From the NCBI GenBank assembly GCA_002269645.1, contig NIVC01000618.1, positions 445,711 through 509,710 on the forward strand: a stretch of 64,000 nt of DNA, read 5' to 3'. This DNA is from Macrostomum lignano (Eukaryota). This document shows, piece by piece, positions 22,406 to 64,000 of this stretch; position 1 is the stretch's first letter; every line of letters begins with the position of its first letter. The notes under the pieces were generated by a model that had not been told where the DNA came from, ran no database searches, and saw only the letters and a program-made list of their open reading frames with translations. The position numbers and the translations under genes are program-made.

Positions 22406-43015
<20,610 letters not shown>

Positions 43016-44534
43016 CAGGTCAGGGATCGCCTCAGGTCTAGGATTCCTTCAGGTCTATGATCGCTTCAGGTCACCGCTTCAGGTGAGGGATGGTTTTTAT
43101 TTGTAAAGAGCTTACAAACAAATATTGCACTCATTTACCCTAAATGACTACTTTCAGTAAGCGTATTTCGATTCCGATAAATGTTTTCAATGTAACTTCT
43201 AGCATGCAGGGCTTGAACGGCTTTGTATAACTAATATGATTCTCTGATTTAGACAAAATAATATAGAGGCTGCTTAACATACACGCGTTCATGCATACAT
43301 ATATAGAGTCATTAAAAAGTTAACAGATTACTGGTAGACATGGCAGGCAACCGGCAGATCAGATGCCAGAATTGCCGATCCTGCTCAGTTCCCAATGCAG
43401 GCTCTCAACTCAATGCGGTACAGTTTCCGGGTCTCAGACAGGTCACAATTGATATGAAATCAGGTATCGGATGAGAACTGAGGGGAGAAGCGGGACAGGA
43501 AGATGGAGTGGTTATTTATATTGCTGGTGCCGGGATGCCTGCCACCTCCGCGCAGTGAAGGCTTTTCAGAGTGGCGTACACAACCGGGGTGCTATTTGTT
43601 TTTCTGGAGTTGACATGGTCGCTCAACCAGATAATATGGTTCGCACAGATCCCATTTTTATTGTTTGGTGTAGCTACAAATATTGGGTGCTACAACTAAG
43701 AAAAAGAGTGAAAGCTAGGCTTGCCTGCATTGGGACTAGCCAATGACAGGACTGGAATGGGGCAGGAGCGGTTTTACCGGTGCCTGAGTGCCTGAGTGAC
43801 GGGCTTCGACCATAGACAATTTATGAGAGTTAGCTGAATGCTACGAGTATGCTGAAACAGAGGGATACAACATACGAGCGTAACTTTACTTCCCTCTTGC
43901 CAGTTACCAGCTTTGCTTTTGCATCAAATTTAACTCATCCGGAGATATTGGTATTTGAGTTTTCGCTTTTGAAAATTAATACACGGTTTGCGAGTGTTGC
44001 ATTTTTCTTTCTGAAGGTGTCTTTGGCCTATGGATTTATTATCCGTGCTTATAATTAAATATCAATACCAGCCGTACAGACGAACTTCATCGATGCTCAT
44101 ATCAGGGTTTGATTTTTAAATCTAGAAATCGTAATCCAGACTTGATGGAAGAGCAGCTAGCAGCTAGGAATGGCCTCGAAGCAGACTCTCCGAACATTCA
44201 AAGAGCAACTTTTCTCATTTTATCAGGTCCATGGTGCCATCCTAAATCACTAAGTGATAGCGCAAGCGTTAAAGCGAATATAATGTCGACTTCTTTGTGC
44301 TGTGCAACCTAAACCGCTAGAGACTGTTTAAACATTACTGTGTATGCGACTATAAGGTCAAATGGACCGCAATGAATTGAATACACTTGCACGGAGAAGC
44401 TCTCGAGATTTACCTGCTTGATTGACAGCTGTCGTCAAGCAAACAAAAGCTGCATCATTTTTGTGGGAAAGCAAGACAGTCTGCTCCGCTCTGACATGTG
44501 AAAGCAGAAAAGTCAAACAACGTCACTCTTTCGA

Positions 44535-44567
44535 CCGGAAACACGTGCCAATCCGATGCGCATAAAT
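44535..44567 (+). promoter_or_regulatory. Conserved promoter core of peptide gene A
   Basis: CCGGAAACACGTGCCAATCCGATGCGCATAAAT about 90 bp upstream of the ATG; ETS-like CCGGAA, E-box CACGTG, CCAAT, TATA-like CATAAAT; shared by all paralogs. Confidence 0.75.
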
Positions 44568-44658
44568 TCAGAACTCCCAACTGCTCAAGAAGTCAACTTC
44601 AAACTCGACTCAATCTACACACAGCTCGAAGACTCGACTCGACTCGACTCAAGCAATC

Positions 44659-44853
44659 ATGAAGTGGCAACTCGCTCTCGGACTTCTGCTGTGCGCAGCC
44701 CTGGCCGTCGCCATGCCCAGCCAGGAGGAGAAGGCCATGGCCGAACGTGTGCTGGAGGAGACTCTGTCCAACCTGGACGAGTCCAGCGTGTCGGAGGAGC
44801 AGATTCCGAAGCTGAAGAAGAAGATCTTCCGTGTTCATGTTAGGTTCGGTTAG
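44659..44853 (+). CDS. Secreted peptide precursor A (signal + acidic pro + KLKKKIFRVHVRF-G)
   Basis: Intronless ATG-TAG ORF; hydrophobic signal ending AVA; E-rich pro-piece; cationic C-terminus ending in Gly; paralogs conserve the frame. Confidence 0.88.
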   Translation: MKWQLALGLLLCAALAVAMPSQEEKAMAERVLEETLSNLDESSVSEEQIPKLKKKIFRVHVRFG

Positions 44854-45773: not shown

Positions 45774-46136
45774 GGGGGGCTGTAGCCCAGCGGTAGCGCA
45801 GCTGCTCTGGTGTGCCAGCGACCCAGGCTCGATTCCAAGTGCAGTCACATTAATTTGGGGCTGAATTGGAATCTCGGCTTGGCTCTGCTCGTGCAATTAA
45901 CGGCCTTGAGAGCCAACCCCCCAAGGCGCAGTGAAGTGTACATGCCTAACGATAATATAAAGTTAGGGCCGCTGTTCACTCCTGTGTGAGTGTGTGCCTG
46001 CGTACGTATCCGCGCGCTTGTGTGCCTGCTCAGGGGAGTCGGCGGAATGGGCAGCAATGCCTCTCGCCGGTTGTGTGCCTATGTCGCTTAAAGTGCGCCA
46101 GGGTGCACACAACCCCCCTGCCTCTAATAAAAAAAA
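45774..46136 (+). mobile_element. tRNA-derived SINE (family 2), copy 2
   Basis: A/B boxes, poly-A tail, 14-bp TSD ATGGTTGATGAAAA; homologous to 11380-11738. Confidence 0.9.
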
Positions 46137-46829
46137 TGGTTGATGAAAATGTCCATGAGAATGTGTATAATATGAGTTTTATTTGTCTCCCTACTAATAT
46201 CTTACTCGTATTCGCTCGATCGCTCGATTCGCTCGAAACCTGTCTTTAGCTGAAGTTGGTTTTTGTCGTTATCCTGAAAAGTTTTTCAATTTTAAATCTG
46301 TTATGCGACCAAAGCAGTCGTCCATATACGAGCTATTATTTAATGATATGCAACTAGTTACTGAAAAGTCAAGCAATTAAATTAGTACAATAATTAAACT
46401 CTACCCTCAGTCGTTAAAATTCGCTTAGGGAACACACTGTAGGACTGCCGGTATTTGCTAGCTCATTTGGTGCGTGAACCTCGTCTGGGGGCACATCGCG
46501 TCACTTGAATTTTACTTGACGCGATTTCCCAGTATTGTACTTGAACAAGTGGGAGAAAATTCCATACTCGAATCCCCCATCGTCACAGAATGGAGCTGCC
46601 AAAGCACACAGAGGCCTGAAATAATTGCACGCGATAACTACTTGAAATATCTTCACTCGGGTATCTGCATTAGGCTTTGAAAAGGACATCGCTGTCTATT
46701 GGATACCGAACTTTTGAGAACTTCTTGCCAGTCTTAGTCAATAGCCTTCCAGTGCACCAATGTTATTTGGTTGAACTTGTACTGACACAGCATTAGAGCA
46801 GTACTTGACTTGTTTGATTGTCAAGATGT

Positions 46830-46965
46830 CATCAAACAAAAAGTACTGCAGACTCGCAGACAGCAAGCCAGTCACTGCTCCGCTCTTCTCACGTGAAAGC
46901 CTTCAACTCAAACAGCGCCGCTCCTCGGACCGGAAAACGTGCCAATCTGATACGCATAAATTCGC
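46830..46965 (+). promoter_or_regulatory. Orphan copy of the peptide-gene promoter (no downstream CDS)
   Basis: CTCACGTGAAAGCC...GGACCGGAAAACGTGCCAATCTGATACGCATAAAT (core 46930-46961). Confidence 0.65.
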
Positions 46966-47816
46966 AGCCAGTGTTTTCATCAAAATCGTGGTGTCTGCAG
47001 TCACAGATAGTAAATTTTAGTGTTGAAGATGTCGAAATTATATTTGAACTGCTCGTGAACATGATTGCAACAATATTTTTTCATTAGACACTTTTTAGAG
47101 AGACAATTAAAAAACTATCCAATAAAATCGCGGCCCATGATCCAGCCGGCGTCCATGTCATCAAGAAGATATCGCGGCAAAATATTTTTGCTGAAAAACA
47201 TTAATCACGCGCTCGTAGCTGCTGACCGCTTAAGACAACTTCAGAATCAGAATCGACCAGAGAGCGACCAAAATGAATCAGACAACTGGTTGGATTATTG
47301 CGAGCTAGTCTTCGCGGAAAAGCCAAGCTTGAACCGAGCCCATTCGAGGCCTGATAGAAATACAAATGCTCGCACTCTGTTCCGAGAGGGTACTGAGGTA
47401 GCAGCTCTGCAGATGTACTCACTCGAGATTTATCTGGCTTCTGCGCCATTCAATGTGTCCCTCAATTCTTGTTCTCAAGCCCTGGAATCATTGTACTGCA
47501 CAAGTGCGGAAAAGGCTGAGCGGTAAGTACATGTATGATCTCTACCAAATCAGCTAGAAAAAATTATATGGCACCCTCAGCAGCTTTGGCACCTTTTCCT
47601 TGAGGGTCATGTTAACGAGGTTTACAGTGGCCGAATCGTGGACTAGGGAACAGATTGCCATTGCACTGCCTCAAGTTCCAGTACTAGCAGCAATGCATTA
47701 AACTGATGGGCACCTAGGCTCTCTCAGACAATGCTACACATCACTTGAGGGAAGGCTGCTTTGGAGGTATTTTAATGTTCTGAAACAATCATAAATAGCT
47801 ATTTGATGAGCCCTCC

Positions 47817-50800
47817 TGGTTGCTAGAATAACTCGAGATGAAAGACAAACTATATGCTGCGCTATTGAAACGATGAAAAACGAAAAGGGGCTCTTGAGCG
47901 AGATGCTCTGGGTCGATATATTTAATGAGCTGAGTGAAAGCGTACAATACACGTGAGCGTAATGTGGGGTGGGGCGATCAGTGAAGAATGAAAGTGGTGC
48001 GATCAATAATTAGGGACTGTACGTATGAGCAAAATAAATATGTTAGCCTAATTGAACGTACATGTAGCTATTGCAAACGAAAAGTTTAAGAAATACCACG
48101 AGACAGTGGCAGCTCCAGAACATACCCCCCACCTTGACATGTCTATGGCAAAAACAAAATAATGATGCAAAAATGTAATTTTGAAAATGAGTGGCAGTGG
48201 AAGCAAAACCTATGAGATAAAGATGCAGAAAAGTTATAACGCAGAACTTACGCAATTCGTACTTGTACAAAACTTGACTAAACAAAATTGTCTTGGTGGG
48301 CTCTGTTACAGTAACGAAAAATGTAGAAAAAAAAGAAACGCGCTTGAGTTCGAAAACATAAACTGCAGTTGTAGCATTTCACGAAAAAAGATTTTAAGAC
48401 GATCAACCCATTACCAGAGAGTGATGTGATTACAAGACAAAGGACAACGTGAAATCGCGATGCAACATGGTTAAATTTGGATTACGATATAAATAATAAT
48501 CGATTCAAAAAATTAACAACCTAAATTACGAAGGCAAACACCAAACTCAAAATTTAAACATGACTGAAATAAACGTATTTGACAAACAAACAAAATAAAA
48601 CTAAGTAATCATTCGCATACCGAAAAAAACACTGTCTAGAAAGCGACAAAAATGATAATGACAAAATGACGAAAACGAAAATACGAATCGACACAGGGAT
48701 TAACAGTTACAGTCCATCGATCAGTGAGTCATAGTCAGCCTTCAATCAGTAATCAATGGGCACAGTCTGTTGATTGGCCGCGTCAGAACCTTGTCCGCCA
48801 GCTGCACTTTTACTACTCGAACATGGCCGTCTCGACCCGGGTACACCTCCAGGACTCGAGCCAGTGGCCAATGACCCCGAGGGCTGTCCGGACAGACATA
48901 CAGCACGACGTCCCCAGGCTTGAGGTCGGGCTGCTCTCGCCGCCATTTGGTTCTCGCACCGAGGCCGGGCAGCCACTCTCGAAGCCATCGCCGCCAAAAC
49001 GACTGCACCAGCCGCTGCACGTAGCGCCACCGCTTGGTTGGGTTGAACACCTCGTCAGCCGAGATCTCCGGTGCCAGCTGTCCGCCAACGTGCCCGTACA
49101 GGAAGTGCGCTGGCGTCAGGACCGGATCGTCACCAGGATGGGACGACTGGTAGGTCAAAGGCCGTGAGTTCAGCAGCAACTCTGCTCCGGTAAATGCTGT
49201 TACAAGCTGCTCATCGCTGACTTCTGCCGATCTCAGGATCGCGTTTATCGCTCTCTTTGCTGATTTTATCATTGACTCATGCACGCCGCCGAAGTGCGGA
49301 GCCGCGGGCGGATTAAAGTGCCACTTGATCGGTACGTGAGATGTGCGTGACTGCAATGCGTTCTTGTCCATCGACTTGCACAGCTCCTTTAGTTCTCTAT
49401 CCGCACCAACAAAATTAGTTCCATTGTCTGAGAAGATTTCCAGAACTTGACCTCGGCGATTGATCATGCGAAACAACGCGTTTAGGAAGCTGCTTGCATC
49501 AAGGCCGTACGCCATTTCTAAATGAACTGCACGCGTTGCCATACAAGTGAAGAGCGCAAAGTACCGCTTCTGACGCACACGTCCCCGACCCTGTTTCGTC
49601 AGGAATGGACCTCCGAAATCTATTGATACTTTCGTAAATGCTCTCAACGGTTCTAGCCGACTGGGAGGCAGTGGTGCCATCAACTGCGAAGCTGGCTGTG
49701 CCTTTCTTCTCCTGCACTCAGCACACTTGACTTCCCAAGCTCGGATGGCCTCTCGGGCAGCTGGGATCCAAAATCGAGCAGTCACTGCAGCAAGTACTTG
49801 ATTGGTGCCCGCGTGATACGCTTTTTCGTGATGGTGCTTGATTATCAATTCTGTCACGTGATGGCACTTTGGCAAGATGATTGGTGATCTGATACTAACC
49901 GGCAATGCTTCGGCCAACTGTAGACGACTCTCTGAGCGAAGAACGTCGCTAGGATCGAGTCTGGGATGCATTCTAGCCAGCTTGCTGCTCTCAGAAACGC
50001 TATTGTTCTTCCTCAAGGCGGAAAGCTCCGTGCTGAATGCATCTTGCTGCACATCCTTGATGATTCTTAACTCCGCGTCTTCTAGCTCCGACGCCTGCAG
50101 CTCTCCTCGAGTTCGGTACTGTGGTTCGAAGCGACAATTGTTGGAAAATCTGCTAATCCAGGCATTTACCCTCAGGAATTTCATCCAGCTGGAGAACTTG
50201 CTCGGATCAAGCCGCTCTACTTGATGCTTTCTTTGCTCGCTGGTGACCATTGTTGCAGACATGACCGTTTCGGACGGGACTGAATCTTTCGCCGAACCTT
50301 TCGTCTCCAGGTCTGCTGGTCGCTCCAACCTGGTACTTGGCCACTTGTAATCGTCATGATGTAAAAACTCTGGACCGTTTTTCCATTTCTGATCCTCGGC
50401 CAGCTGAGTTATCGTTGCGCCTCTTGACAGCAGATCGGCAGGATTGCACGCCGTTGGCACGTGTCTCCACTGGTTCGGATCAGTTGCCTGCTGGATTTCT
50501 CCGATGCGATTCGCAACGAACGGTTTAAAGAAGCGTCCTCTTCCACGAATCCAAAACAGAACGTTCATGCTGTCCGACCAGAATACCGCATCTTTGATGT
50601 TCATCTCTAGTGCCTTGGCAATCTTGACCGCTAGATTCAGCCCAATGACCGCTGCCATCAGCTCCAGCCTCGGAATGCTCATAGTTGCTATGGGTGCAAC
50701 TCGAGACTTGGCAGCGATGAGCCGAACGGATATCGAGGCGTCGGTGTACTTGCATCGTAGATAACACACTGCTCCGTAGGCCTTCTCCGAAGCATCGACA

Positions 50801-53800
50801 AAGCAGTGAAGCTGAGACTGCGTAGGTACGCAAGAGAACTGCAGACAGCGATAAACTCGAAAGCAGTTCAGCTTCGTCAGGTCAGCACACCATGCTTGAA
50901 TCCTCCTTTGCAGAGCCTCGTCCGGCGCTTCATCCCAATCAAGGCCGCTGCACCAGAGCTCCTGCAGTAGTATCTTTGCCTGCGCGGTGAAAGGTGCTAT
51001 CAATCCGAGAGGATCGTACATTGAAGCCAATCTCTTTAGCAGAATCCTCTTTGACTTGACTGGTCTCAGCTCGCTATCAGCAACAAAGGTGAATTCATCG
51101 TCCTCACTTTTCCAGACTACTCCAAGCGTCTTCGAAACTGGCAACGGCTGACCATCCAGGCTCACCTCCGCGACTCTATCCTCTGGTGCTACACACGCAA
51201 GCAATGCTCTCGAGTTTGAAATCCACTTCCTAGCGTGCATACCAGCTCGCTCCCACAATTGGCTCAGCTCCTGATACAACTGAATAGCCTCTGAATCAGT
51301 CTTCTTCGAATCCAGGCAGTCATCCATGTAAGTTGACTGGAGCACTGTTTCTGCGGCCGATGGAAACTCCTGCTTCAGCTTCTTTGCGTGCTCCTGAGTC
51401 ACGAATTGCGCCAGAAATGGTGAGCTCGTTGCTCCAAAAACCACTCGGTTGAACTCGAATGTCTGTGGTACCTTTGTCGGATCCATGTCCCGCCACAGAA
51501 AGCTGTGCGCTGCCCGATCTTCTGGTGCGATCGCGATTTGCAAGTACATTTCAGAAATGTCGCAAGCAACCGCCACTGGATGCCTCCTGAAGCGCAGGAG
51601 CACATCAACCAGATCTTTCTGAAGCTTCGGTCCTGCCAGCATCAGGCTATTCAACGACTCCTCACCGCCAGCTGAAGCATCAAAGACGATGCGCACTTTG
51701 GTAGTTGCCTTATCCATTCGAACCACTGGGAAATGAGGAAGGTGATACCTGTTCGCTGGTTGTTGCTCATGCTCCAGTACTCTTCTGATGTAGCCAACAT
51801 TTTCGTAGCGACTGATGACGTCCTGATACTGCTTTGCTAGATCCGGATCTTTGCGGAGCCTCTTCTCGGTATTTGCAAGCCGCCTGATAGCCATTTCAAA
51901 GTTGCTATCATTAAACGTGACATCCGGTTTCCACGGAATGCCAACTTGGTATCGCCCATCGAAGAACTTTAGCGATGATCGAGTTCTTTCCAAAGCGAGC
52001 TGCTCTGCATTAGTAAATGAAGATGGTTCGATGCTTCTCACCTCTTCTACTTCCCAAAACTGGCGTAACAGTGGCGCTAGATTCTCAGACCCGCCTCGGC
52101 TGAAGAACGTGTTTGCAAACAACGCGTGCTCCGAAGCTCCATCAACTCTACCGATACAAGTCCAACCTAAAGGTGTCAGCCGCGCTTGCGGATCTCCGGG
52201 GTCGCCGGTCACTTCCAACTGTGATGCATGCAAGTCTGGGTGATCGACTCCGATCAGCAAGTCAACCTCCGCTGGCGTTTGCATTCTTGGAAACGGAATG
52301 TTTGCTAAGTGCGACCATTTCGACGCCAATTCTTGCCAATCTACTACTTCCATGTTCCCTGTCACTCTATCTACCGTCAGCGCAGTAATCTCCTTGCTTA
52401 TTTGGCCGTCAGTACTCTCCAAGGTGCATGACACTGGTGCTGTTATGAAGGTTTCCACCTGTCCGTTCAACACGTTTACCTGCATTGATTCCTGTTTTCC
52501 GTGCAGGCCAAGCTTGGATGCTATCGCCGTATTCAAATAGGTCTTTGTGCTGGCGTCATCAAGTAAGGCATTGACCTTCACCGCTCGCCTATTCGCCTTA
52601 AGAATGACCGGAACCGTTCGAAGTGAAACCGCACTGGCTTCTCTAGCGACCATTGTCACGGTTGCAGCTTTCGGCTTCGACTGCATTTCTTGCTCAGCAC
52701 CGACTTTGACTTCTGACTTCTCTTTCGATTCCGACCTTGCTGTCGAATGCAGCAGACGATGGTGGGATTTGGTGCATCCATCAACGCCGCACTTTCGACC
52801 TCGTCGGCAGTTCATACCGTTGTGACCATGGCCAAGACAGCGGAAACAGGCTTTGGCTTCCTGAGCAGCCTTCCATCTGTTCTCAGACGACAGTTTCCCG
52901 AATGCGGGACACTTCCATAGATCGTGCGCCTCCTTGCAGACTACACAGGAGTAGCTCCCCTTGCTTGAGCTCTTGCTTAGCTGTGCTACATGGAAGGCCT
53001 TCTGCTTGCTGTCCTTTCTTGGTTGCTCCTGACTCGATGCGGCCACCCCGTACACAATTTCTGCTGCCTCAGTCCGGAACTCTGCCTCACGCAAAACCCA
53101 CTCTCGAAGGGTCCTAACGCCTTCTGCTTTCGCCTTCTCGAAGATCCATCGTCGAAATGCTGCGACCATCGGCTCTGGTAACTTTTTTTGCAATCTAGCA
53201 TAAAGCAGTCCATCACTAAGTTCGGAGTTCTTACCAGCTTCTTCCAAATTAATTACAGCCACATCGAGGATGTTCGCGAATTTCTTCAGCTCCTCGGCAC
53301 TATTCTGCTTCACGGGTGGAAAACTATCTAGCTCTTCCAAGTAGTGCGCCAACTGTCGTCGCTTGCCGCCGTACTCACGCTCCAATCTCTCCTTGGCCGC
53401 CTGATAGGCAGCAGCCGAATGACCCAAGTGCTCTATTACCTTCAGCGCTGATCCACGCAAATACTGACGCAACTGCAGCAGTTTGAACTCTGGTGTTGCT
53501 GGAGCCCTATCGATGCAAGCCATGAAGGCAGCCTTCCACGCTTCATACTGTTGCTTGTCGCCATAGAATGTTGGAATCTCCACTCTGCGCAACATCTTCC
53601 AGAGATCCTTCGACAGCTCTTGCTCCGAAGAGTTGCCGAGCCTGCATTCGTCTACTGATTCAGAAGAGCTTGTTCGATCCTCCGCTCTCATCTCGAAACC
53701 CGCATGCTGATTTGAAGAAGGCAGGTAGCCAAACTCACCTAGGTCTCTGTAGGGCCTCTGCTGTCTCTGTCCTCGCATGAAGTCCGGCTCTGCAACACTG

Positions 53801-54646
53801 AATCCGATTTGCCGATCTAGATTGACTGCACCCAGCGATTGGGCTGTCGCTGCCGCCGACTCTGCCGCCGGCTCTGCTGCCGACGCTGCCGCTGTCTCCT
53901 GAGGAACTTGTGCCGCTGCAGATGGTGACTGCTGAGTTGCTAGGAAACGCTGGACCTCTCGCATGCTGACGCGGTAGTCCTCCTCGACGGTTTCTATTTC
54001 ATCGAGCAGCCGAGAGTGCTGTGCTGCGTCGCTGTTGTTTCGTTGCAACTCGTCGCTCAACTCATACAGCGCCTCGATTGTTCCCTCGAAGATCTCGGTT
54101 ACGGCTTCGCATTGGTGCTGAATTTCGCTCTTGTCAGAACCGTCTTGTAATAGCCAGGCCAGTTTATTTCGATTCTTGGTCAGCGCAGACTTGAACTTGG
54201 TCTTTTGTCGCCTCAGAGCATTCAGCGAAGCAACATCGGGCTCTGGCGCTTGCTTCTGTTTTTCGTCGTCGCTCATACTGATCTAACAGACTATTGGACA
54301 CGATGTACTGTGGCTTGAGTAACCACGCTCTGCTACCAAATGGTTGCTAGAATAACTCGAGATGAAAGACAAACTATATGCTGCGCTATTGAAACGATGA
54401 AAAACGAAAAGGGGCTCTTGAGCGAGATGCTCTGGGTCGATATATTTAATGAGCTGAGTGAAAGCGTACAATACACGTGAGCGTAATGTGGGGTGGGGCG
54501 ATCAGTGAAGAATGAAAGTGGTGCGATCAATAATTAGGGACTGTACGTATGAGCAAAATAAATATGTTAGCCTAATTGAACGTACATGTAGCTATTGCAA
54601 ACGAAAAGTTTAAGAAATACCACGAGACAGTGGCAGCTCCAGAACA
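47817..54646 (-). mobile_element. Full-length BEL/Pao LTR retrotransposon
   Basis: 306-bp LTRs 47817-48122 and 54341-54646 (TG...CA, identical by eye); TSD CCTCC; PBS TGGTAGCAGAGCGTGGTT (tRNAi-Met-like) at 54321-54338; PPT next to 48122. Confidence 0.97.
48742..54276 (-). CDS. BEL/Pao gag-pol polyprotein, 1844 aa, uninterrupted
   Basis: IPTFYGD gag motif; three Cys/His knuckles; ALLDDAS protease; YMDD RT; HCFVDASEKAYGA RNase H; IDFGGP, SDNGTNF, HFGGVHESMIK integrase. Confidence 0.97.
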   Translation of the reverse strand: MSDDEKQKQAPEPDVASLNALRRQKTKFKSALTKNRNKLAWLLQDGSDKSEIQHQCEAVTEIFEGTIEALYELSDELQRNNSDAAQHSRLLDEIETVEEDYRVSMREVQRFLATQQSPSAAAQVPQETAAASAAEPAAESAAATAQSLGAVNLDRQIGFSVAEPDFMRGQRQQRPYRDLGEFGYLPSSNQHAGFEMRAEDRTSSSESVDECRLGNSSEQELSKDLWKMLRRVEIPTFYGDKQQYEAWKAAFMACIDRAPATPEFKLLQLRQYLRGSALKVIEHLGHSAAAYQAAKERLEREYGGKRRQLAHYLEELDSFPPVKQNSAEELKKFANILDVAVINLEEAGKNSELSDGLLYARLQKKLPEPMVAAFRRWIFEKAKAEGVRTLREWVLREAEFRTEAAEIVYGVAASSQEQPRKDSKQKAFHVAQLSKSSSKGSYSCVVCKEAHDLWKCPAFGKLSSENRWKAAQEAKACFRCLGHGHNGMNCRRGRKCGVDGCTKSHHRLLHSTARSESKEKSEVKVGAEQEMQSKPKAATVTMVAREASAVSLRTVPVILKANRRAVKVNALLDDASTKTYLNTAIASKLGLHGKQESMQVNVLNGQVETFITAPVSCTLESTDGQISKEITALTVDRVTGNMEVVDWQELASKWSHLANIPFPRMQTPAEVDLLIGVDHPDLHASQLEVTGDPGDPQARLTPLGWTCIGRVDGASEHALFANTFFSRGGSENLAPLLRQFWEVEEVRSIEPSSFTNAEQLALERTRSSLKFFDGRYQVGIPWKPDVTFNDSNFEMAIRRLANTEKRLRKDPDLAKQYQDVISRYENVGYIRRVLEHEQQPANRYHLPHFPVVRMDKATTKVRIVFDASAGGEESLNSLMLAGPKLQKDLVDVLLRFRRHPVAVACDISEMYLQIAIAPEDRAAHSFLWRDMDPTKVPQTFEFNRVVFGATSSPFLAQFVTQEHAKKLKQEFPSAAETVLQSTYMDDCLDSKKTDSEAIQLYQELSQLWERAGMHARKWISNSRALLACVAPEDRVAEVSLDGQPLPVSKTLGVVWKSEDDEFTFVADSELRPVKSKRILLKRLASMYDPLGLIAPFTAQAKILLQELWCSGLDWDEAPDEALQRRIQAWCADLTKLNCFRVYRCLQFSCVPTQSQLHCFVDASEKAYGAVCYLRCKYTDASISVRLIAAKSRVAPIATMSIPRLELMAAVIGLNLAVKIAKALEMNIKDAVFWSDSMNVLFWIRGRGRFFKPFVANRIGEIQQATDPNQWRHVPTACNPADLLSRGATITQLAEDQKWKNGPEFLHHDDYKWPSTRLERPADLETKGSAKDSVPSETVMSATMVTSEQRKHQVERLDPSKFSSWMKFLRVNAWISRFSNNCRFEPQYRTRGELQASELEDAELRIIKDVQQDAFSTELSALRKNNSVSESSKLARMHPRLDPSDVLRSESRLQLAEALPVSIRSPIILPKCHHVTELIIKHHHEKAYHAGTNQVLAAVTARFWIPAAREAIRAWEVKCAECRRRKAQPASQLMAPLPPSRLEPLRAFTKVSIDFGGPFLTKQGRGRVRQKRYFALFTCMATRAVHLEMAYGLDASSFLNALFRMINRRGQVLEIFSDNGTNFVGADRELKELCKSMDKNALQSRTSHVPIKWHFNPPAAPHFGGVHESMIKSAKRAINAILRSAEVSDEQLVTAFTGAELLLNSRPLTYQSSHPGDDPVLTPAHFLYGHVGGQLAPEISADEVFNPTKRWRYVQRLVQSFWRRWLREWLPGLGARTKWRREQPDLKPGDVVLYVCPDSPRGHWPLARVLEVYPGRDGHVRVVKVQLADKVLTRPINRLCPLITD

Positions 54647-54963
54647 CCTCCTAATCGTAAGTTCAACTGTGTTAATTCAGGAAAGCATTCCTCAAGCATG
54701 GGCTCGAATCGCCATTCTATCTATACACTTTCCTGAGCCGAGGAATTACTCGTACCTCTGCTGCAAGCGGCTGTCAATTAACTTTACAGTGCAGCTGGCC
54801 AAGAGTAAAATAGAAAGCGGCAAGTCGAATACACTTGCATAGAAAGAGTTCCTGTGAGTTACCTGCTTGATTGACGGCTTTCATCAAACAAATATATTCT
54901 GCGAGATATGCGAGCTCTGCTCACGTGAAAGCCTATAACTCAAACATCATCGCAGCTGCCAGA

Positions 54964-54996
54964 CCGGAAACACGTGCCAATCCGATGCGCATAAAT
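54964..54996 (+). promoter_or_regulatory. Conserved promoter core of peptide gene B
   Basis: Exact 33-bp match to the gene A core. Confidence 0.75.
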
Positions 54997-55087
54997 ACAT
55001 ACCTCTCAACTGCTCAAGAACTCAACTTCAAACTCGACTCAATCTACACACAGCTCGAAGACTCGACTCGACTCGACTCAAACAATC

Positions 55088-55306
55088 ATGAAGTGGCAAC
55101 TCGCTCTCGGACTTTTGCTGTGCGCAGCCCTGGCCGTCGCCGAGCCCTCACGAGAGGAGAAGGCTGAGGCCATGGCCGCTCTGGAGGCTCTGTCCAACGT
55201 TGACGAGTCCAGCATGTCGGAGGAGGCCGTGGACACCGCCAAGAAGTGGCTCAGAGTTAGGGCCAGGGTTAGGGTCGGATCCAGGAGGAGGTCTAGGTCC
55301 GGTTAG
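55088..55306 (+). CDS. Secreted peptide precursor B (signal + acidic pro + KKWLRVRARVRVGSRRRSRS-G)
   Basis: 18-aa signal identical to A and C; diverged acidic pro-piece; extended Arg-rich C-terminus ending Gly-stop. Confidence 0.88.
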   Translation: MKWQLALGLLLCAALAVAEPSREEKAEAMAALEALSNVDESSMSEEAVDTAKKWLRVRARVRVGSRRRSRSG

Positions 55307-55673
55307 ATGCGCCTTGCACTGCATCTGAGACCGACGTCATTTGGCTGGCATTGACAACTCAGCTGATTTGACTCTGAACTTTGTCTCGCGACCGCAAAGT
55401 TCTCAAATTTTGAAACCTACCCAGCTCCTATTCACTGATAAAGTTTACCAAATATAACGACAGTAAAAGCTGAAGTGCTACGCAAAAGTAACTGCATTGA
55501 CTTTTCGATCTTTTTTAACTTTTCCAAGGCGCAACTAGTAATTATATGCACGGGAACTGCTGTTGGATACGAATTGTACCATGACCTTTGTGCCCGCTGG
55601 GCACTTATTCTTGCCTTTTAATCCCATAGACTACATTTAAGCCCGCTTGCAGGAGTCAAACTTACTTTAATGC

Positions 55674-55886
55674 AAATTAGCGGGCAGTTAATGTCATTAA
55701 CTGCCCGCTAATTTTGTCCCACTTTGTCAAGGACACAAATGTCTATGGCACAATAATAGTAATACCCATGCTTTAGGGGCGTTAATGAGAAATCCTCGGG
55801 AGCCTAACGGCGCCCTCTGATTTTCCCATTAACGCCCTTAAAGCATGGGTACTAATGTACATGTACTATTAGCGGGCAGTTAATGA
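55674..55886. repeat. Nested inverted repeats (probable MITE-type remnant)
   Basis: Perfect 20-bp hairpin 55674-55714; ~35-bp imperfect IR 55757-55855; third copy of ATTAGCGGGCAGTTAATG at ~55868. Confidence 0.75.
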
Positions 55887-56199
55887 TATATTCTTCTGCA
55901 CTATTTTTGAGTGTTTTTTGAGTATTTTTTGAGTATTTGAGTATTTTTGAGTATTTTTGAGCTCGTGACTGCAATAGACAAAGTATTTTTCGTCTCGTTT
56001 TCGTTTTCGTTCTCCTCTGAAAGGTATGTTCCAGAATAGTACGAGCTCGCAGCAAAATATGCTTTCAGCCAATAGGAAGGAACGGGGGGGAAGGGATGTT
56101 AAAAGCGAAAATCGAGCGAGATAAAAATAACTGGCTCAGATTAGCACTCCATTCTATTCTTTCCTCTTTCCTCTTTCCTAGGCAAGCCTAGCGCAAACC

Positions 56200-56292
56200 G
56201 CAGCCGATACTCTTAGACAGCAAGCCAACTCTTCTCACGTGCAAGCCTTTAACTCCTCGGACCGGAAGACTTGCCATCCGATACGCATAATT
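56200..56292 (+). promoter_or_regulatory. Second orphan, more degraded copy of the peptide-gene promoter
   Basis: GACAGCAAGCCA...CTCACGTG...CTCGGACCGGAAGACTTGCCATCCGATACGCATAA. Confidence 0.55.
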
Positions 56293-57559
56293 TTTTGGGG
56301 TTTTAAGTGTCCAATTAGGGTTTTAACTACATATGTAGATGATTGCAAAAATATTACGTCTGTCATTAGCTATTTTCTAAATGTTTTCGAAAAAACTACT
56401 TCGAACGTTGGGGACAAATGGAAAGTGGATAATGGCTAATTATTGACAATCTACTTCAGTATTGTCAAATTTTGCATGTATATTTCATGTCCAATGATGC
56501 AGGCAAAATAAGCCTTCAGCCTTAGCCTTTAGCCTTCATTGGTGGCTCATCAAATGAGCGTAGACTCGCAGATGAAGACTGTGAGATGATGAGGGACGGA
56601 GAGGAAGAAATGCGACGCAGAGAGGTAGAGGCAGTGGTAGGGAGTTTGGTAATGAGTTTCTGAATCAGAAGTGATCTCACTCGATCAATGTATCGAGGAG
56701 GTGTCAAGGCTTAATGGGAAAGGGGTTTCGAAGGAGCCCTAGAGTAAATCGGGAGTTGTTGGTTGGACAAGAATCAAAGGGAGAGTAAGTGTTAACGTCA
56801 GCCATGATTTTGATTTCGAAGCTCAAAAGGGATACTGATATCTTAGTCAAGATAGCTAGCTGACTTTCAGGGCAAATTTTTATTTACTTTAAATGATTTT
56901 CGTAAGTAACTAACAATATTGAATGCAGGGACTACTCAAACAGTGTTTTAGCAGTCCCTGAGTGTATGTACGCTTTTCACGTTCTTTGTTGCCTCCTGAA
57001 AGGGGGCGAAGGTGGCTAGTCACAGGCTGCAATTTTAAGTAGAAATGAATTGCACTTGTTTTTGAGCTACAATAAAAACAGAAAAAACAGTCTTACAACG
57101 ACTGGTTGGAGCGTTTTTCACTAAGAAGAGCTGACTAAAGAAGATTACCTTTGGAATTTGGAATAATGTCAGGAAAAGGCGGAATAAAATACAGAAAGAA
57201 ACAACTTTTTAAGCACTGATAAATCATATTCGAATAAATCCAACCCTTAACTATTTGGAAGCCAAAGGCCTGCACTGCAGGCCATACCGAAACGGCCCAG
57301 AAACCCAGAGATTTAAAAATGTCTATAGCATCAAAAACCATCTCCCAATCACTAAAGCAAGTGCCCAGTATGGCCTGCTGTGCAGGCCATGACTGATTTA
57401 AAGACGTCCATTATGCATTTCCATTGTGTTTTCACTCAAATGGGAAATGTTAAAGGGGAAATAAAGCGTGGATGAATTAGCATGGATCTGGACAGAGACC
57501 AGGATTTCCGGGACATTGGCTGCAGCAAAATACTGTCTTCTTAGCTGGAACGTCAGGTT

Positions 57560-58474: not shown

Positions 58475-58669
58475 CTAACCGATGCGGACCCTAACCCTGA
58501 AGATCTTCTTCTTCAGGTCCATGGCCTTCTCCTCCGACACGTTGGGCTCGTCCAGGTTGGACAGAGTCTCCTCCAGCACACGTTCGGCCATGGCCTTCTC
58601 CTCCTGGCTGGGCACGGCGACGGCCAGGGCTGCGCACAGCAAAAGTCCGAGAGCGAGTTGCCACTTCAT
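58475..58669 (-). CDS. Secreted peptide precursor C (signal + acidic pro + KKKIFRVRVRI-G)
   Basis: Close paralog of A with the same architecture and the shared promoter core at 58761-58793. Confidence 0.9.
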   Translation of the reverse strand: MKWQLALGLLLCAALAVAVPSQEEKAMAERVLEETLSNLDEPNVSEEKAMDLKKKIFRVRVRIG

Positions 58670-58760
58670 GATTGCTTGAGTCGAGTTGAGTCGAGTCTTC
58701 GAGCTGTGTGTAGATTGAGTCGAGTTTGAAGTTGAATTCTTGAGCAGTTGGGAGTTACGA

Positions 58761-58793
58761 ATTTATGCACATCGGATTGGCACGTGTTTCCGG
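58761..58793 (-). promoter_or_regulatory. Conserved promoter core of peptide gene C
   Basis: 32/33 match to the gene A core on the minus strand. Confidence 0.75.
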
Positions 58794-59446
58794 TCGGAGG
58801 AGCGACGCTGTTTGACCTGTCTTCTTTTAACGGAGCAGAGTCTGGGTGACTGAGCAGTAATTGCTCTTTTGATGACAGTGAGCAATTAAACAATTAACGC
58901 GAGAATGAATTTCAAGTAGAAGTGTATTCGCCTAGTTTAAAGCTCATCAATTAAGTTTATTGACAGATTCTAATGGTTAAGGTTCGTTGGTATTTGTCCC
59001 CTTCATTTTTTCTCGGGGTATTTCCTAATATTTTTAAAGGCTACATAACCGAAATAGAAGAAATTTAAATTATCTAATTAACTATATTATCTTAGTAAAG
59101 GCAGCGGAGCTGTGTGAAATTTAAGCGACACAGGCAAGTGACAGAAATCTAATTGCAGAGACAGATTTATTATATATTTTCAGGAATGGCATTTCCGTGT
59201 GCTAAATTAGACTTGGACTTCTAGCGTTCTCGTAAGTAGTCAGTGAATCGAAAAAAAGAATGCCCTTGTCATGAAATAGGAAAACATTACAAATTCTGAG
59301 TCTAAACTCTTTATGAGGCTCATACTCATATACCTAAAACAAGGTGAACTAAAACGGTAAACGGCAGTAACAAGTGAAGGTGGCTAATCGATCATTATTG
59401 ACTATCTACTTCAGTATTATCAATAGTTACATATATCTTGTCTAGC

Positions 59447-62374
59447 TGTTGTGTTCTAGTGACACAGAGAGTTTCGTTTGATTGTAGCTTTTTGAGCTCA
59501 GAGATACACATCTCGCTCACAATATATTTATAGAGATCAAACTCCTACTTGCACGTTGCACGTTGCACGTTGCAATCTCCTACTCATTCTAGTATGAGTA
59601 CAGTATACACCCACGCATTCAATAAGGCCAATAGTTCATTGTCAGTAGTCAGTTCATTGCGCGAGCATTGTCAATCACAACATTCTTTCCCCTTCCGGAA
59701 GAGGATAACACGCCGGTTGCCGTCGAGCTCGAGTCGACCTTCGGAGCGCCGCCTCGGGTAGTGGCTCGCCAGGCGGTGGTGGCGGCACCGTCGCCGCCCT
59801 GGCCACCGGCTCAGGCAGCAGGAGCGCCTCGAACAGCTCGTCCGCTCGGTCTTTGCTTCGCCTTCGCTTGTTGGTGTAGTCGGCATTCTTAGCTCGCCTC
59901 TGTGCGATGCTGTCGCGCAGGTCGTCGTCGCTCGGCAGTTGCTCTTGAGTCGGCCTGAGTAGTTTGCCTGAGGAGCCGCCGCGACCTCGCGGAAGATGTC
60001 GATTTCGATCTTGTCCCATGGACCTGCTGGCCACTCGTCTGTTGAGGCTTGCCAGACTCCTCCCCCAGAGTGCAGGCCGTGCAGTTCTCGACGTAGTCCT
60101 CCACCTGCCGGTCAATTCCAGGAAACCAGACCGTGTCGCGGCACCGCTGCATAGACCGAAAGACCCGGATGCCCTTCGTGGGCCTCCTCGATGACTTGAA
60201 GTCGCAGGCTCGTCGGGATGATCGCGCGTTCACACGACCGAGGCACTGACCGTACTTCCAGCAGAACAGCTCGTCCCGGACGTTGAAGTACGGCTTCAGA
60301 GAGCTGTCCACCTTCGTCGGCCAGCCACCCGAGATGTACGCAGAACCGGCTGCAGCACTTCGTCCTCCTTGGTCGCCGTTGCCAGTGCGTCTGCCGTCAG
60401 CGTTGTCTTCGAGTTGACGACTGCGTAGACGTAACCTCCTCATCAGTCTCCTCGGCTGGAACACGCTCCTTCGTGGCCCATCTGGACAGCATGTCCGCGC
60501 ACACTTGTTGTCAGCGCCAGGGATGTGCTCAAACCGGACGTCGTAGCCGCGAAGTCTCGACCCATCGATGATGTGCCCCATGCCTTTCGAGTCGAGCAGA
60601 GTTGTCAGGGCCTTGTGGTCGGTGCGCAGCGTTACTCGTCTGCCGTATAGATAGTAGTGCCAGCGTTCGATGCTTCATACACAGGCCAGGGCTTGTCGCT
60701 CTCCGGCTGAGTATCGCTTTTCCGCTGGGCTGAGTGCTCTCGATGCGAACGCGATTGGCACCTTTTTCCGTTTTGTACTTGGCTGAGTACCACCCCAGTC
60801 CGTCTAGACTTGCATCGCAGGTGACGTACGTCTCAGCTTGGCAGTCAAAATGAACTAACACTGGGCTGCTGGTTACGGCTGACTTGAGTGTACGGAAGGC
60901 TGTACGTTCTCGCTCACCCCAGTGCCAGTCCGCGTCCTTTTTGAGCAGTTGTCTCAGAGCTCGGCGATCGCTGAGTAATGCGGTATGAACTTGTGCAAAA
61001 AGTTCACTGCGCCGAGGAACGATTAAATTTGCGCGACCGTTTTTGGCTCAGGAATTCTTAGAATTGCGTCGATGTTGGACTTGGTCGGTTTGAGGCCGTC
61101 TGCAGAGATGACCAATCCGAAGAAATCCACGCTCGCCTGCCGGAATTTGCACTTCTCTCGATTGAGTGTAAAGCCTTCGCGGTGAATTCGCCCTAAGACT
61201 TCTCGGAGGTTCTTGTCGTGCTCAGTCTCGTGCTTGCCGTGCACCAGGATGTCGTCCACGATGTTGATGGCGCCTGGAGCTCCTCGAAGCACCGTCTGCA
61301 GGGCTCGCTGGAAGGCAGCTCCGGAGCTGGATAGCCCGAATGTCACCACAGTGAACTGGTACAGGCCGGCATCGGTGATGAAGCACGTTAGTCCTCGAGA
61401 GTCTGGATGCAGTGGAATCTGCTGGTAGCCTTGACGTAGGTCCAGCTTGCTGAAGCACTTCGAGCCGTTGATGCTGGCCGATAGGTCCTCGATTGACGGT
61501 ACCGGATAGCTGTCCGCGATCACCGCCCGTTGACCTGCCGCAGATCCACGCAGAGACGAACCTTGTTGGACTCCTTCTTGCGCGTCACGACTACGTTGCT
61601 GACCCACTCGGACGCGTCGACTTTCTCAATGATGCCCTGTTGCTCCATCCGGCTGATCTCTGACGTCACTTCGTCCTTCAGGCCGATCGGCAGCTTCCGC
61701 ATTGGCTCAGACACTGGCTTGACCGAGGCGTCGATCTTTGTCCGGTTAATGAAGCTCTTGGACCGGCCCAGACCGTCGAAGATTCCGGAGAAGTCGCGCT
61801 CGATCGTAGTCTCGCTGATGCTCATCACTCTTTTCGCCTTGGAAGATTCTGAATCCGAGGGCCTAAAACAGGTCGCGGCCCAGGATCTTCGCTCTTTTGT
61901 CGGCGACATAGAATGTGGCTTCTGTCCAGATGTCGTTAAACGTCACTGGAAGCTCGACCTTGCCGATGGTTTTGATCGCAAATCCGCCGTATGCCTCCAG
62001 TCTTGTGCTCGTCGGGAGCAGCGGGTGCCTAGCGAAGGATTTCTTGAACGTCTCCGTGTTGAGCAATGAGACGGCAGCACCGCAGTCGATTTGTAGTCGG
62101 ATCATTTGTAGTCGCAGAATAAGTTGTCGATGCTCCTGTTGTTCACTGCCAAGACCGCAAGGCTAGACTTTGATTGTAGCTTTTTGAGCTCAGCGATACA
62201 CATCTCGCTCACAATATATTTATAGAGATCAAACTCCTACTTGCACGTTGCACGTTGCACGTTGCAATCTCCTACTCATTCTAGTATGAGTACAGTATAC
62301 GCCCACGCATTCAATAAGGCCAATAGTTCATTGTCAGTAGTCAGTTCATTGCGCGAGCATTGTCAATCACAACA
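59447..62374 (-). mobile_element. Internally deleted Ty3/Gypsy derivative
   Basis: Termini TGTTGTG...CACAACA; TSD CTAGC (59442-59446, 62375-62379); full LTR 59447-59682, truncated LTR 62169-62374; PPT; frameshifted pol pieces (IDCGAA protease, IVDDILVHG RT, TCDASLDGLG RNase H); no gag or PBS. Confidence 0.9.
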
Positions 62375-63467
62375 CTAGCAATGCAGGGAAAATAAGTCGG
62401 GATCATGAAAACGGGAGCATTGTGTGAGAGCGTCAGATTAAGAAAATGAGCGGCGCTAGGGGAGAAGGAGAGGGAAGAGGTTGAGTGCGAAGCAGGGAGG
62501 TAGAGACAGTGTAGGGAGAAAGAGTTACGGCATAGAAAGAAGAAATGGTTCGAAATTCAGTAGCTACAGTAGTAGTTTCACAGCTAAATGAAAGTTGATG
62601 AGTGTATTAGCTCTGCTTCCGTCTGTCTCCATCTGAGTTTCTACGCATATCTGATAAGCCCTAACGCAGGCTAGCGTCACAAGTCGAAAGACAAGTCAAG
62701 GCGTATTTGAGCCTGATATAAAATTTACCCAAGCAACAGGCTTGCTTGCTTTGAGAGTTTTAACCGTTTCGTTTGACCTGAAGCTACCAGTCTAAGCGTG
62801 CAATTTGGACTCCGAGGAGGTGCTACTTTTCTCCAACAAGGCCGTCGGCTGTTTTGAAGCTGCCGATTTGACTAAAAACATCACTGTTACAGTCAATTAG
62901 TCCGCATGCGGGGTGTCAACCCTGACTTTTAGGCGGCCGACAGACAAAGACTACTGGCAGCACTACTCGATGCAAATAGTGCTCGTGCTCAGCGACTCAG
63001 CACTCACGAGTGCGACCTCGGCACCAGCGCCTCCCTCCCACAAAATCTGATTCTATCTTGGCAAGTGAAGAATCGATCTGGACATCAAGATCTATTTAAA
63101 CAAAGCAGTTTCAATGATGAATTTTTAGTTATTAAATTCGTATCCTTGACTGAATGGAAGTTAGGCCGGATGATCTATTACAAGCAGCCAATCATTAGCT
63201 ACGAGTTATATGCATTTAGGTACCAGTCCTCCACACAGCGACTTTCGAATTGCAAATTGAAACTAAAATAGCTCAACGATACGACTTTTAACTTTTAGTT
63301 TGCTGAGTGCTTGAACGGTTGTGATTGTTGTTATATTTGGTAGAACTAATCAGTAAACAAGTGCTTTTAAAATTTCACTCTGAATACCGGTCACAAGTCA
63401 GGGTTCAGAGTCAAGCCAGTCATATACGGTGAAGGGACTTCAATCTCAGGTGTATCTGAGAGCTCAT

Positions 63468-63647
63468 CTAACCAATCCTGACACGAAGACGGACGAACTT
63501 CTTCTTCAGCTTCGGAAACTGCTCCCGACACGCTGACTCGTCCAGGTTGGACAGAGTCTCCTCCACACATCGTCGGCCATGGCCTTCTCCTCCTGGCTGG
63601 CACGGCGACGGCCAGGGCTCGCACAGCAAAAGTCCGAGAGCGAGTTG
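63468..63647 (-). pseudogene. Degenerate peptide precursor D (C-terminus KLKKKFVRLRVRI-G)
   Basis: Homologous to A and C but the ATG region is deleted and there are several 1-bp deletions; promoter core remnant at 63718-63748. Confidence 0.8.
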
Positions 63648-64000
63648 TTCTTTTGACTATTCGAGCTAGATTGAGTCGAGTTTGAGTTGACTTCTTTGAG
63701 GCAGTTGGAGTTTCCGAATTTATGCGCATCGGATTGGCACGTTCTGGTCGGGGAGCGACGCTTGTTTGACCTGTTTCTTCACGTGAGAATAGCGGAACAG
63801 AGACTGTCTTGCTTTCCTACAAGAAATGATGCAGCTTTTGTTTGCTTGACGACAGCTGTCAGTCAAACAGATAACTCTTGAGAATTTTCTCTCTGAAACT
63901 GGTCTATAGACCATTCGGATTAAGCTATTTGACTTTTAGTTGCATAGTAGAGTTTACCGTCAGTCTACAGCTGACTTGTAATTGTTTGCGCAGAATAGAT

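Follow-up and report, generated by a model that had tools for sequence, protein, structure and literature searches.

Genes, promoters and relics of the cluster

The window analysed here is a 64,000-nucleotide (nt) stretch of the genome of the flatworm Macrostomum lignano (assembly GCA_002269645.1, contig NIVC01000618.1), and it holds a cluster of small genes for predicted secretory precursors with a short cationic tail. Three of these genes, A, B and C, are intact and are found in the open reading frame (ORF) list where the initial annotation had placed them. The fourth copy, D, is broken and lacks an ATG, so that the proposed cluster of four genes comprises three genes and one copy that is not an intact gene in this sequence (Table 1). 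Each intact precursor opens with the same signal, MKWQLALGLLLCAALAVA, whose 18 residues match exactly in A, B and C, as had been claimed. By inspection, this signal consists of MKW followed by a 15-residue hydrophobic core, positions −3 to −1 being A-V-A. The acidic propiece comes next, with a net charge of −6 in gene A and −7 in gene C, and leads to a Lys-Lys or Lys-Lys-Lys junction and a Cys-free tail that ends in Gly-stop. This anatomy, too, is as first described: the junctions and tails read KKK-IFRVHVRFG in A, KK-WLRVRARVRVGSRRRSRSG in B, KKK-IFRVRVRIG in C and KKK-FVRLRVRIG in D.

A tblastn search of the 64-kilobase (kb) window with A–C as queries gives matches only at A–D, with E values of 1e-13 to 1e-38, a similarity far beyond chance. 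No further copy is found in the window beyond A–D, whether A–C or seven divergent members of the superfamily described below serve as queries. At the DNA level the copies are 82–92% identical over about 270 nt 5' of the ATG, and the similarity falls off directly after the stop codon. The genes had been called intronless, which is correct as far as the coding sequence goes: in the assembly, the gene models of paralogs are single-exon, for example 195 nt for 64 amino acids (aa) and a stop. The untranslated regions (UTRs) may contain introns.

Table 1. Positions of the family copies, their promoter regions and the intervening retroelements in the window.
Feature	Coordinates	Strand	Content and source
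Gene A promoter/5'UTR	44380..44658	+	motif CGGAAACACGTG at 44536-44547, CCAAT, TATA-like GCATAAAT at 44560-44567
Gene A coding sequence	44659..44853	+	64 aa: MKWQLALGLLLCAALAVA-MPSQEEKAMAERVLEETLSNLDESSVSEEQIPKL-KKK-IFRVHVRFG-stop (ORF list, tblastn)
Relic E	46859..46963	+	promoter core TCACGTGA … CCGGAAAACGTGCCAAT … GCATAAAT; counterpart L003:1892-1996
BEL/Pao-type long terminal repeat (LTR) retrotransposon	47817..54640	-	300-nt LTRs, 100% identical; one uninterrupted 1844-aa ORF
Gene B promoter/5'UTR	54828..55087	+	motif and TATA-like box at 54965-54996
Gene B coding sequence	55088..55306	+	72 aa: MKWQLALGLLLCAALAVA (…AVA)-EPSREEKAEAMAALEALSNVDESSMSEEAVDTA-KK-WLRVRARVRVGSRRRSRSG-stop (ORF list)
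Relic F	56228..56290	+	second partial copy of the same promoter core
Gene C coding sequence	58475..58669	-	64 aa: MKWQLALGLLLCAALAVA, acidic propiece, …KKK-IFRVRVRIG-stop (ORF list, tblastn)
Gene C promoter/5'UTR	58670..58950	-	motif and TATA-like box at 58761-58792
Degraded retroelement between C and D	59477..62374	-	206-nt direct repeats, 99% identical
Copy D	63468..63656	-	ATG lost, several 1-2 nt deletions; C-terminal part in frame, …KLKKK-FVRLRVRI-G-stop
Copy D promoter/5'UTR	63657..63883	-	homologous to that of gene A; many small deletions

The cluster belongs to a duplicated family, as the initial annotation had it, and the family extends well beyond the window. A protein search with A returns 15 clusters; all but two window-encoded ones are M. 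lignano proteins named 'hypothetical protein BOX15_Mlig…'. Nine paralogous loci were taken from the assembly, and all family counts given here cover the window and those nine loci. Together they contain at least 24 intact copies with 20 distinct coding sequences and 18 distinct proteins, arranged as arrays of 2–6 genes within 3–17 kb. The KK/KKK junction is invariant, and Gly-stop ends 20 of the 20 distinct coding sequences. One of the loci, L003, corresponds to the window cluster in rearranged form and carries an intact D-type gene and a second copy of the long tail of gene B. The paralog gene models come from a transcript-based annotation (PMC5730564), which is indirect evidence that the family is transcribed. 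NCBI and UniProt already list the family proteins, as uncharacterised proteins of M. lignano. One of these records, P0015 (UniRef A0A1I8G6Q8), is a B-type precursor that ends in …WLRVRARTDVIWLALTTQLI, a tail joined to sequence of the 3'UTR of gene B; this end is probably a mis-predicted intron or a deletion. Its UniRef name, 'SERPIN domain-containing protein', does not fit a 73-residue peptide precursor. Another family protein, P0011 (contig NIVC01002033.1), has a 21-residue internal duplication of its acidic propiece (…AMAVLEALSNVDESSMSEEAVDN twice).

The tail of gene B departs from the others in length. It reads WLRVRARVRV-GSRRRSRS and then Gly-stop, which amounts to an in-frame insertion directly before the stop in comparison with the other copies. 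The GSRRRSRSG extension is without counterpart in the other paralogs of the WLRVRARVRIG type, and its second copy lies at L003:17220 on the minus strand.

Copy D is matched by tblastn at 63653..63471 on the minus strand, and its last 53 codons (63468..63629) read …KLKKKFVRLRVRIG-stop. The intact D-type counterpart, at L003:5868-6059 on the minus strand, reads …KKKFVRLRVRIG. Alignment of window positions 63032-63986 (955 nt) with L003:5428-6417 shows 16 mismatches and 33 gap events, comprising 27 deletions and six insertions in the window, and nearly all of the damage to D consists of deletions of 1–6 nt relative to this counterpart. The gaps are concentrated in the unit that exists in several copies (promoter, 5'UTR and coding sequence), with 29 of the 33 falling within 63526-63778, while the unique flank 63032-63500 has three. 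Elsewhere mismatches far exceed gaps: the other homologous stretches of the window and L003 have 72 and 13, 101 and 22, and 43 and 5, respectively. Deletions that are confined to the repeat and poor in substitutions make a consensus or polishing artefact of long reads look likelier than ordinary pseudogene decay. Copy D is either a pseudogene or a mis-assembled copy, broken in this sequence and possibly intact in the animal.

The region upstream of the coding sequence is conserved among A–D and also among paralogs and subfamilies at other loci. Alignment of this DNA from nine genes of six subfamilies reveals an invariant core, CGGAAA[CA]ACGTG … [CT]ATAAAT, about 95–125 nt 5' of the ATG. Within the core, CGGAAA[CA]ACGTG sits 10–30 nt upstream of the TATA-like [CT]ATAAAT, which takes the canonical form TATAAAT in two subfamilies. 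The core pattern has three matches in the window, at A, B and C, against zero expected, and it is also present at loci L001, L002, L010, L011, L013 and L014. A palindromic E-box, TCACGTGA, is often found further upstream. The CGGAAA[CA]ACGTG element is a candidate cell-type- or stimulus-specific enhancer.

Two further partial copies of this promoter, relics E and F, contain the E-box, CCGGAAA-ACGTG, CCAAT and GCATAAAT. The idea that they drive another peptide gene was rejected, since neither family coding sequence nor a common ORF lies behind either of them. Together they match one promoter-only relic in L003, where E and F with their flanks (46701-47077 and 56288-57223) form a single continuous stretch, L003:1734-3055. 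The window block 47077-56228, which holds the LTR element and gene B, thus sits within the duplicated relic.

A conserved prepro region and a patterned, variable tail

A comparison of all intact copies shows three regions with distinct behaviour. The signal follows the consensus M-K-W-Q-[LI]-A-L-G-L-L-L-[CF]-A-A-[LM]-[AV]-V-A, with small residues at −3 and −1. The propiece spans 33–35 residues with a net charge of −5 to −9 and is followed by KK or KKK, the Cys-free tail and Gly-stop. The tails occur in 13 distinct versions of 6, 8 or 10 residues. FIHIHF has six residues; IFRVHVRF, FVRVHVRF, IFRVRVRI, IFRVRVHI, FVRLRVRI and FVRVRVRL have eight; and WLRVRARVRI/V, FVRVRARIRL, FVRARVRVRL, FIRARVRVRL and IFRVRARIHI have ten. 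All 13 fit a single formula, Phi-Phi-(Arg/His-Phi)n followed by Gly, where Phi is a hydrophobic residue and n is 2, 3 or 4. Insertions and deletions in the tail come in steps of two residues, as multiples of six nt, and the register of the alternation is thereby kept. Tail charge ranges from +2 to +4 (+8 in the B type) and is 0 for FIHIHF, His, the flanking Lys residues and the free N-terminus being uncounted. The Eisenberg hydrophobic moment is maximal at 180 degrees per residue, the value of an extended strand, for each Arg-containing tail tested, and peaks at 160 degrees for FIHIHF.

This alternation of hydrophobic and basic residues, which had been noticed in the four window copies, is under selection. 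At least 18 replacement events can be counted in the tails, and all of them preserve the residue class. The expectation is 0.44 per event, the rate at which random non-synonymous single-nucleotide changes in these tail codons keep the class, and the probability of the observed outcome is about 4e-7.

Region-wise Nei-Gojobori estimates, summed over all pairs of distinct coding sequences, give proportions of synonymous (pS) and non-synonymous (pN) differences of 0.091 and 0.025 for the signal, 0.095 and 0.093 for the propiece, and 0.333 and 0.221 for the tail. The signal is under constraint, and the propiece resembles a spacer that carries charge. The tail has diverged most, at synonymous and non-synonymous sites alike, and still keeps its pattern. 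Variation is therefore concentrated in the predicted mature region, in agreement with the original description. The ratio of non-synonymous to synonymous change (dN/dS) by region, which had been put forward as a check, is 0.59 for the tail, without an excess of non-synonymous change; diversifying selection on the tail, which calls for a ratio above 1, was dropped as an explanation. Conservation of promoter and 5'UTR equals that of the signal, and the sequence 3' of the stop diverges.

The same division between conserved and variable parts recurs on a larger scale. A profile of nine family members, searched against 1.84 billion representative proteins at E ≤ 0.001, gives 11 matches. Ten are short, signal-bearing superfamily proteins, nine of them from M. 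lignano (two encoded in the window) and one from an assembly of sequencing run SRR31628392; the eleventh is P0022, a protein of 2492 aa (E 8.8e-4). A second, word-indexed search with a 13-sequence profile against 5.8 billion proteins added more superfamily relatives. In these relatives the signal, nearly invariant across the superfamily, reads M[KR]WQ[LF][AV]LGLLLC…, the propiece is again acidic (…AEAMAALEAL…) and the junction is Lys or Lys-Lys. Unrelated tails follow, among them WRRRRRFRWRKAIRVAGKVAKAVL, FLRVRLPRVRMPRVRLPRVRLPRLRVRFRWSKK, GFHVHFHG, WRIKSACKIFRRLLHLARKCYAKKG, WFSRWFRITYRRRGGERRYLRSYFRLG, WRIRFRRIRIRWRRVYRVVRTAYRIYRHLPFPGK, WLLRRIRIRWRRVLRVASRVYRIYRYLPIGK and FRIRIRWGRVARNVLRLLGK. 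Net charge is +6 to +14 in the longer ones (18–33 residues), and a terminal G or GK, a classical amidation signal, closes several of the tails. The Arg/His-alternating (RV/H) family is thus one branch of a larger M. lignano superfamily. The conserved unit comprises promoter, 5'UTR, signal and propiece, and the exchangeable unit the cationic tail with its 3'UTR. The member from run SRR31628392 (locus L010, a Logan assembly of 929 nt) combines the promoter core with a tail of Pro/Arg repeats, FLRVRLPRVRMPRVRLPRVRLPRLRVRFRWSKK; this gene either is absent from the M. lignano assembly or stems from a related species. All other hits whose source was traced are M. lignano proteins.

Beyond these relatives the searches are empty. 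The profile search found no clear relative outside Macrostomum among the 1.84 billion representative proteins. Hmmscan against the named Pfam antimicrobial peptide families (cecropin, dermaseptin/FSAP propeptide, melittin) finds none for A, B and C at E ≤ 10 and none for P0011, P0013 and P0007 at E ≤ 1. A profile search of the sequences in the Protein Data Bank (PDB) gives nothing significant, with one chance-level match at E = 6.2. The Pfam model PF22991, Lock_Gag1-like, which has a gathering cut-off of 27 bits, scores 19.2 bits with A, 16.6 with B and 12.6 with C over a 17–22-residue stretch of the acidic propiece, and was set aside as a chance resemblance. Only P0011 reaches the cut-off, at 27.1 bits, because this stretch of the propiece is duplicated in it.

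A full-text literature search with 22 Mlig gene IDs and six peptide strings found no mention of the family. Nine of the 22 IDs were sought in the supplements of papers on neoblasts and germline, ploidy, seminal-fluid in situ hybridisation and intestinal knock-down, and none is present there. No gene-encoded antimicrobial peptide family from M. lignano is described in the literature searched. The initial annotation had recognised no named family here, and the Pfam, PDB and literature searches bear this out, with the proviso that the proteins were already on record as uncharacterised. The sequences themselves are thus not new; the family is without a name, a Pfam model, a solved structure or a paper in what was searchable. 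Its layout is of a known kind, that of cationic prepropeptides, and the combination of features is undescribed in the same searchable material. That combination would join ultra-short, linear Phi-Phi-(Arg/His-Phi)n-amide strands to one promoter-signal-propiece cassette that serves many unrelated cationic tails, and this in a flatworm.

Predicted function and competing explanations

These genes may be seen as a multigene family specific to M. lignano, in which each gene would be a small TATA-driven unit with a single coding exon for a prepropeptide. The reading ranked first, which we hold at about an even chance on the sequence evidence, is that they encode secreted, KK-processed, amidated, amphipathic beta-strand peptides that act on membranes in defence. 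The AXA-type signal peptide, cut after …AVA, would bring the product into the secretory pathway. The acidic and probably helical propiece (net −5 to −9) may neutralise the cationic C-terminus while the product is stored. A prohormone-convertase-type enzyme would then cleave at the conserved KK/KKK, and the terminal Gly would give rise to a C-terminal amide. The predicted products, Phi-Phi-(Arg/His-Phi)n-NH2 of 6–10 residues (18 in the B type), would present a hydrophobic face and a cationic face as extended strands, and their most likely role would be that of a secreted, membrane-active host-defence effector of the antimicrobial type. In general, a signal peptide directs secretion, a dibasic site allows cleavage by prohormone convertases, and a C-terminal Gly, alone or followed by a basic residue, serves for alpha-amidation; the sequences are fully compatible with this chain. 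We infer the cleavage site, the amidation, the conformation, the membrane activity and the defence role from the layout of the precursors.

The direction of conservation is the property that separates the possible functions. In neuropeptide families the mature peptide is preserved and the spacers diverge, whereas host-defence families do the reverse. A conserved prepro region with a hypervariable mature part is found in frog dermaseptins, cathelicidins and Hydra arminins. The defence-type pattern is seen here threefold: inside the RV/H family, from one subfamily to the next, and in the promoter. The superfamily, with its conserved promoter, signal and propiece and its unrelated cationic tails, strengthens the host-defence reading over the neuropeptide reading, and its tails of +6 to +14 over 18–33 residues look like antimicrobial peptides and not like neuropeptides. 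Designed, amidated [hydrophobic-cationic]n octamers, [IR]4-NH2 and IRIKIRIK among them, form beta-strands and are antimicrobial (PMC8757834; PMC4330034).

A comparison with known systems shows what is shared and what is particular to M. lignano. Dermaseptin-type prepropeptides, covered in Pfam by the frog skin active peptide signal and propeptide, and cathelicidins have a signal, an acidic propiece, a basic site and a cationic, often Gly-amidated mature part, and they too form multigene families with a conserved preproregion and a hypervariable mature part. There is no sequence homology, hmmscan at E ≤ 10 giving no match to any antimicrobial peptide family in Pfam, and the present family comes from a flatworm, uses KK/KKK in place of KR and has mature peptides that are much shorter and of strand type instead of helical. 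Hydra arminins are lineage-restricted and combine a signal and an anionic N-terminal part with a cationic, Cys-free C-terminal peptide released by processing. Their C-terminal peptides, however, have about 30 residues and do not alternate, and the profile searches, in which all clear relatives are of Macrostomum type, show no homology. Arenicin and tachyplesin resemble the tails in their Arg/Val-rich amphipathic beta structure, which is predicted here, but they are disulfide hairpins of about 17–21 residues, whereas the RV/H tails are Cys-free and, at 6–10 residues, too short for a hairpin.

A further likeness is to the synthetic [XZ]n-NH2 designs, among them [IR]4-NH2 and IRIKIRIK-NH2 (IK8L), which share with the predicted products the length of 8–10 residues, the strict alternation, the C-terminal amide and the absence of Cys. 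IFRVRVRI-NH2 differs from [IR]4 only by its hydrophobic residues and its doubled hydrophobic N-terminus. The designs are man-made. In the M. lignano tails two hydrophobic residues come first, Val, Ala, Ile, Leu, Phe and Trp are mixed, and His serves alongside Arg.

Several points weigh against a defence role. Val-based alternating peptides are reported to be weak, with a threshold length of 6–8 residues (PMC8757834). FIHIHF has neither Arg nor Lys and no fixed positive charge at neutral pH, so this tail and the Val-rich octamers may be weak antimicrobials. Positive selection, a frequent trait of defence peptides, does not show in the tail, which offers few sites. An AlphaFold2 model built on the 13-sequence alignment is all-helical and of low confidence (predicted local distance difference test 62, predicted template modelling score 0.24), and neither supports nor refutes the beta-strand. 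The literature and supplement searches yielded no expression site, peptide mass spectrum or activity datum. Finally, amidated peptides of 6–10 residues ending in -VRF, -VRI or -VRL match flatworm neuropeptides in size and C-terminal chemistry.

This last resemblance leads to an unlikely alternative, namely that the genes are neuropeptide or peptide-hormone precursors, each yielding one -VRF-, -VRI- or -VRL-amide peptide that acts on a G-protein-coupled receptor or a peptide-gated channel. This would imply a Macrostomum-specific expansion akin in kind to the FMRFamide-like and I/Lamide peptides, which are likewise short, amidated and derived from small secreted flatworm precursors. The predicted products have a basic pair before them and a Gly after them; the tails end in RF-G, RI-G, RL-G and RV-G, and also in HI-G and HF-G. 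The last three residues are shared with GFVRI-NH2 and AFVRL-NH2 of schistosome Sm-npp-1 and also with RFamides, and the amidation machinery is best known in neurons. The pattern of conservation is nevertheless inverted, the signal and propiece being nearly fixed and the predicted bioactive part being the most diverged, with a length that varies by two-residue units. Arg is freely exchanged for His (FIHIHF, IFRVRVHI), and basic residues repeat along the tail; for schistosome neuropeptides, the I/Lamides among them, high conservation from species to species is described. The near-identical tandem copies number in the dozens and carry one peptide each, with no multi-copy precursor among them, and sister subfamilies with the same promoter, signal and propiece bear the long polycationic tails. 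The lack of a clear relative outside Macrostomum among the proteins searched also speaks against it.

Somewhat less probable again is that the peptides build or modulate some secreted material, for instance mucus, the content of rhabdites or rhammites, adhesive or releasing secretion, seminal material or egg shell, in which the strands self-assemble into beta-sheet fibrils or bind polyanions or, in the His variants, metals, the killing of microbes being secondary. Strict alternation of hydrophobic and charged residues is a design rule of self-assembling beta-sheet peptides, and a minireview notes that alternating sequences tend strongly to amyloid-like fibrils (PMC8757834). The high gene dosage fits a bulk secretory product. 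Members such as FIHIHF and GFHVHFH alternate His without any Arg or Lys, and they resemble heptapeptides designed to bind metal and form fibrils. No gland or material is linked to the genes, and the sister tails do not alternate but are helix-like or Pro/Arg-rich and cationic, more typical of antimicrobial peptides than of fibril formers. Peptides of 8–10 residues with a charge of +3 or +4 would also repel one another unless polyanions or phosphate are present (PMC8757834). A more specific version, more doubtful still, holds that the RV/H peptides are natural counterparts of the designer self-assembling peptides and form cationic beta-sheet fibrils or gels that make up a functional material in mucus, adhesive or rhabdite secretions. 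If so, the assembly of FIHIHF-NH2 and GFHVHFH-NH2 would be switched by metal or pH, the material would perhaps also be antimicrobial, and the animal would possess a gene family that makes minimal functional amyloid building blocks.

That the ORFs yield no functional peptide, and belong to a repeated non-coding or decaying element whose frames are open only while the copies are young, is scarcely credible. The copies are very similar and part of their conservation reflects recent duplication, D is broken, and E and F are promoter-only relics. Yet, for all the tail pS of 0.33, ATG, reading frame, KK junction and Gly-stop are intact in all 24 other copies. The tail insertions and deletions keep to multiples of six nt, at least 18 replacements keep the residue class, the pN of the signal is far under its pS, and divergent subfamilies retain the same open architecture.

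Should the host-defence reading hold, the family would be a flatworm case of defence-peptide evolution by a conserved cassette with a hypervariable warhead, a pattern otherwise known, to our knowledge, from frogs, mammals and Hydra. Linear [hydrophobic-Arg]n-amide beta-strand peptides, a class that has so far mostly been designed by hand, would also gain natural examples; antimicrobial peptides that are linear and beta-stranded count as uncommon in nature (PMC8757834). If the products were neuropeptides instead, they would form an unusually expanded and fast-changing amide family. M. lignano is a regeneration model amenable to transgenesis and RNA interference that lives in microbe-rich intertidal sand, and the compact promoter region of about 270 nt common to all copies offers a ready reporter for the producing cell type.

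Other elements in the window

The cluster is interrupted by retroelements that are not part of the family. The BEL/Pao-type element lies between gene A with relic E on one side and gene B on the other, and its single ORF contains DUF1759 gag-like, Peptidase_A17, RVT_1, integrase zinc and DUF5641 domains. With its identical LTRs and uninterrupted frame, it is probably a very recent insertion. In the degraded retroelement between C and D, the reverse transcriptase and integrase-like frames are split over several ORFs, for example 61023-61607 (RVT_1). A third retroelement, of Ty3/Gypsy type, occupies 24010-28145. It has a gag-like ORF with CCHC knuckles (24010-24492) and, after it, a pol ORF of 1195 aa with protease, reverse transcriptase, RNase H and integrase, and a tandem array of (CTAT…) type lies just upstream, at about 23.4–24.0 kb.

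Exon-like ORFs on the plus strand at about 4100-5500 and at 14085-15124 carry motifs of the voltage-sensor S4 type and an Ion_trans Pfam match, which points to a voltage-gated cation channel gene in the first third of the window. Long microsatellite-like arrays are present at about 1.2–2.3 kb and 5.5–6.4 kb. Finally, a 153-nt inverted repeat with arms at 41942-42094 and 42423-42575, which are 97% complementary and separated by 328 nt, could be an element resembling a miniature inverted-repeat transposable element (MITE) or a hairpin element.

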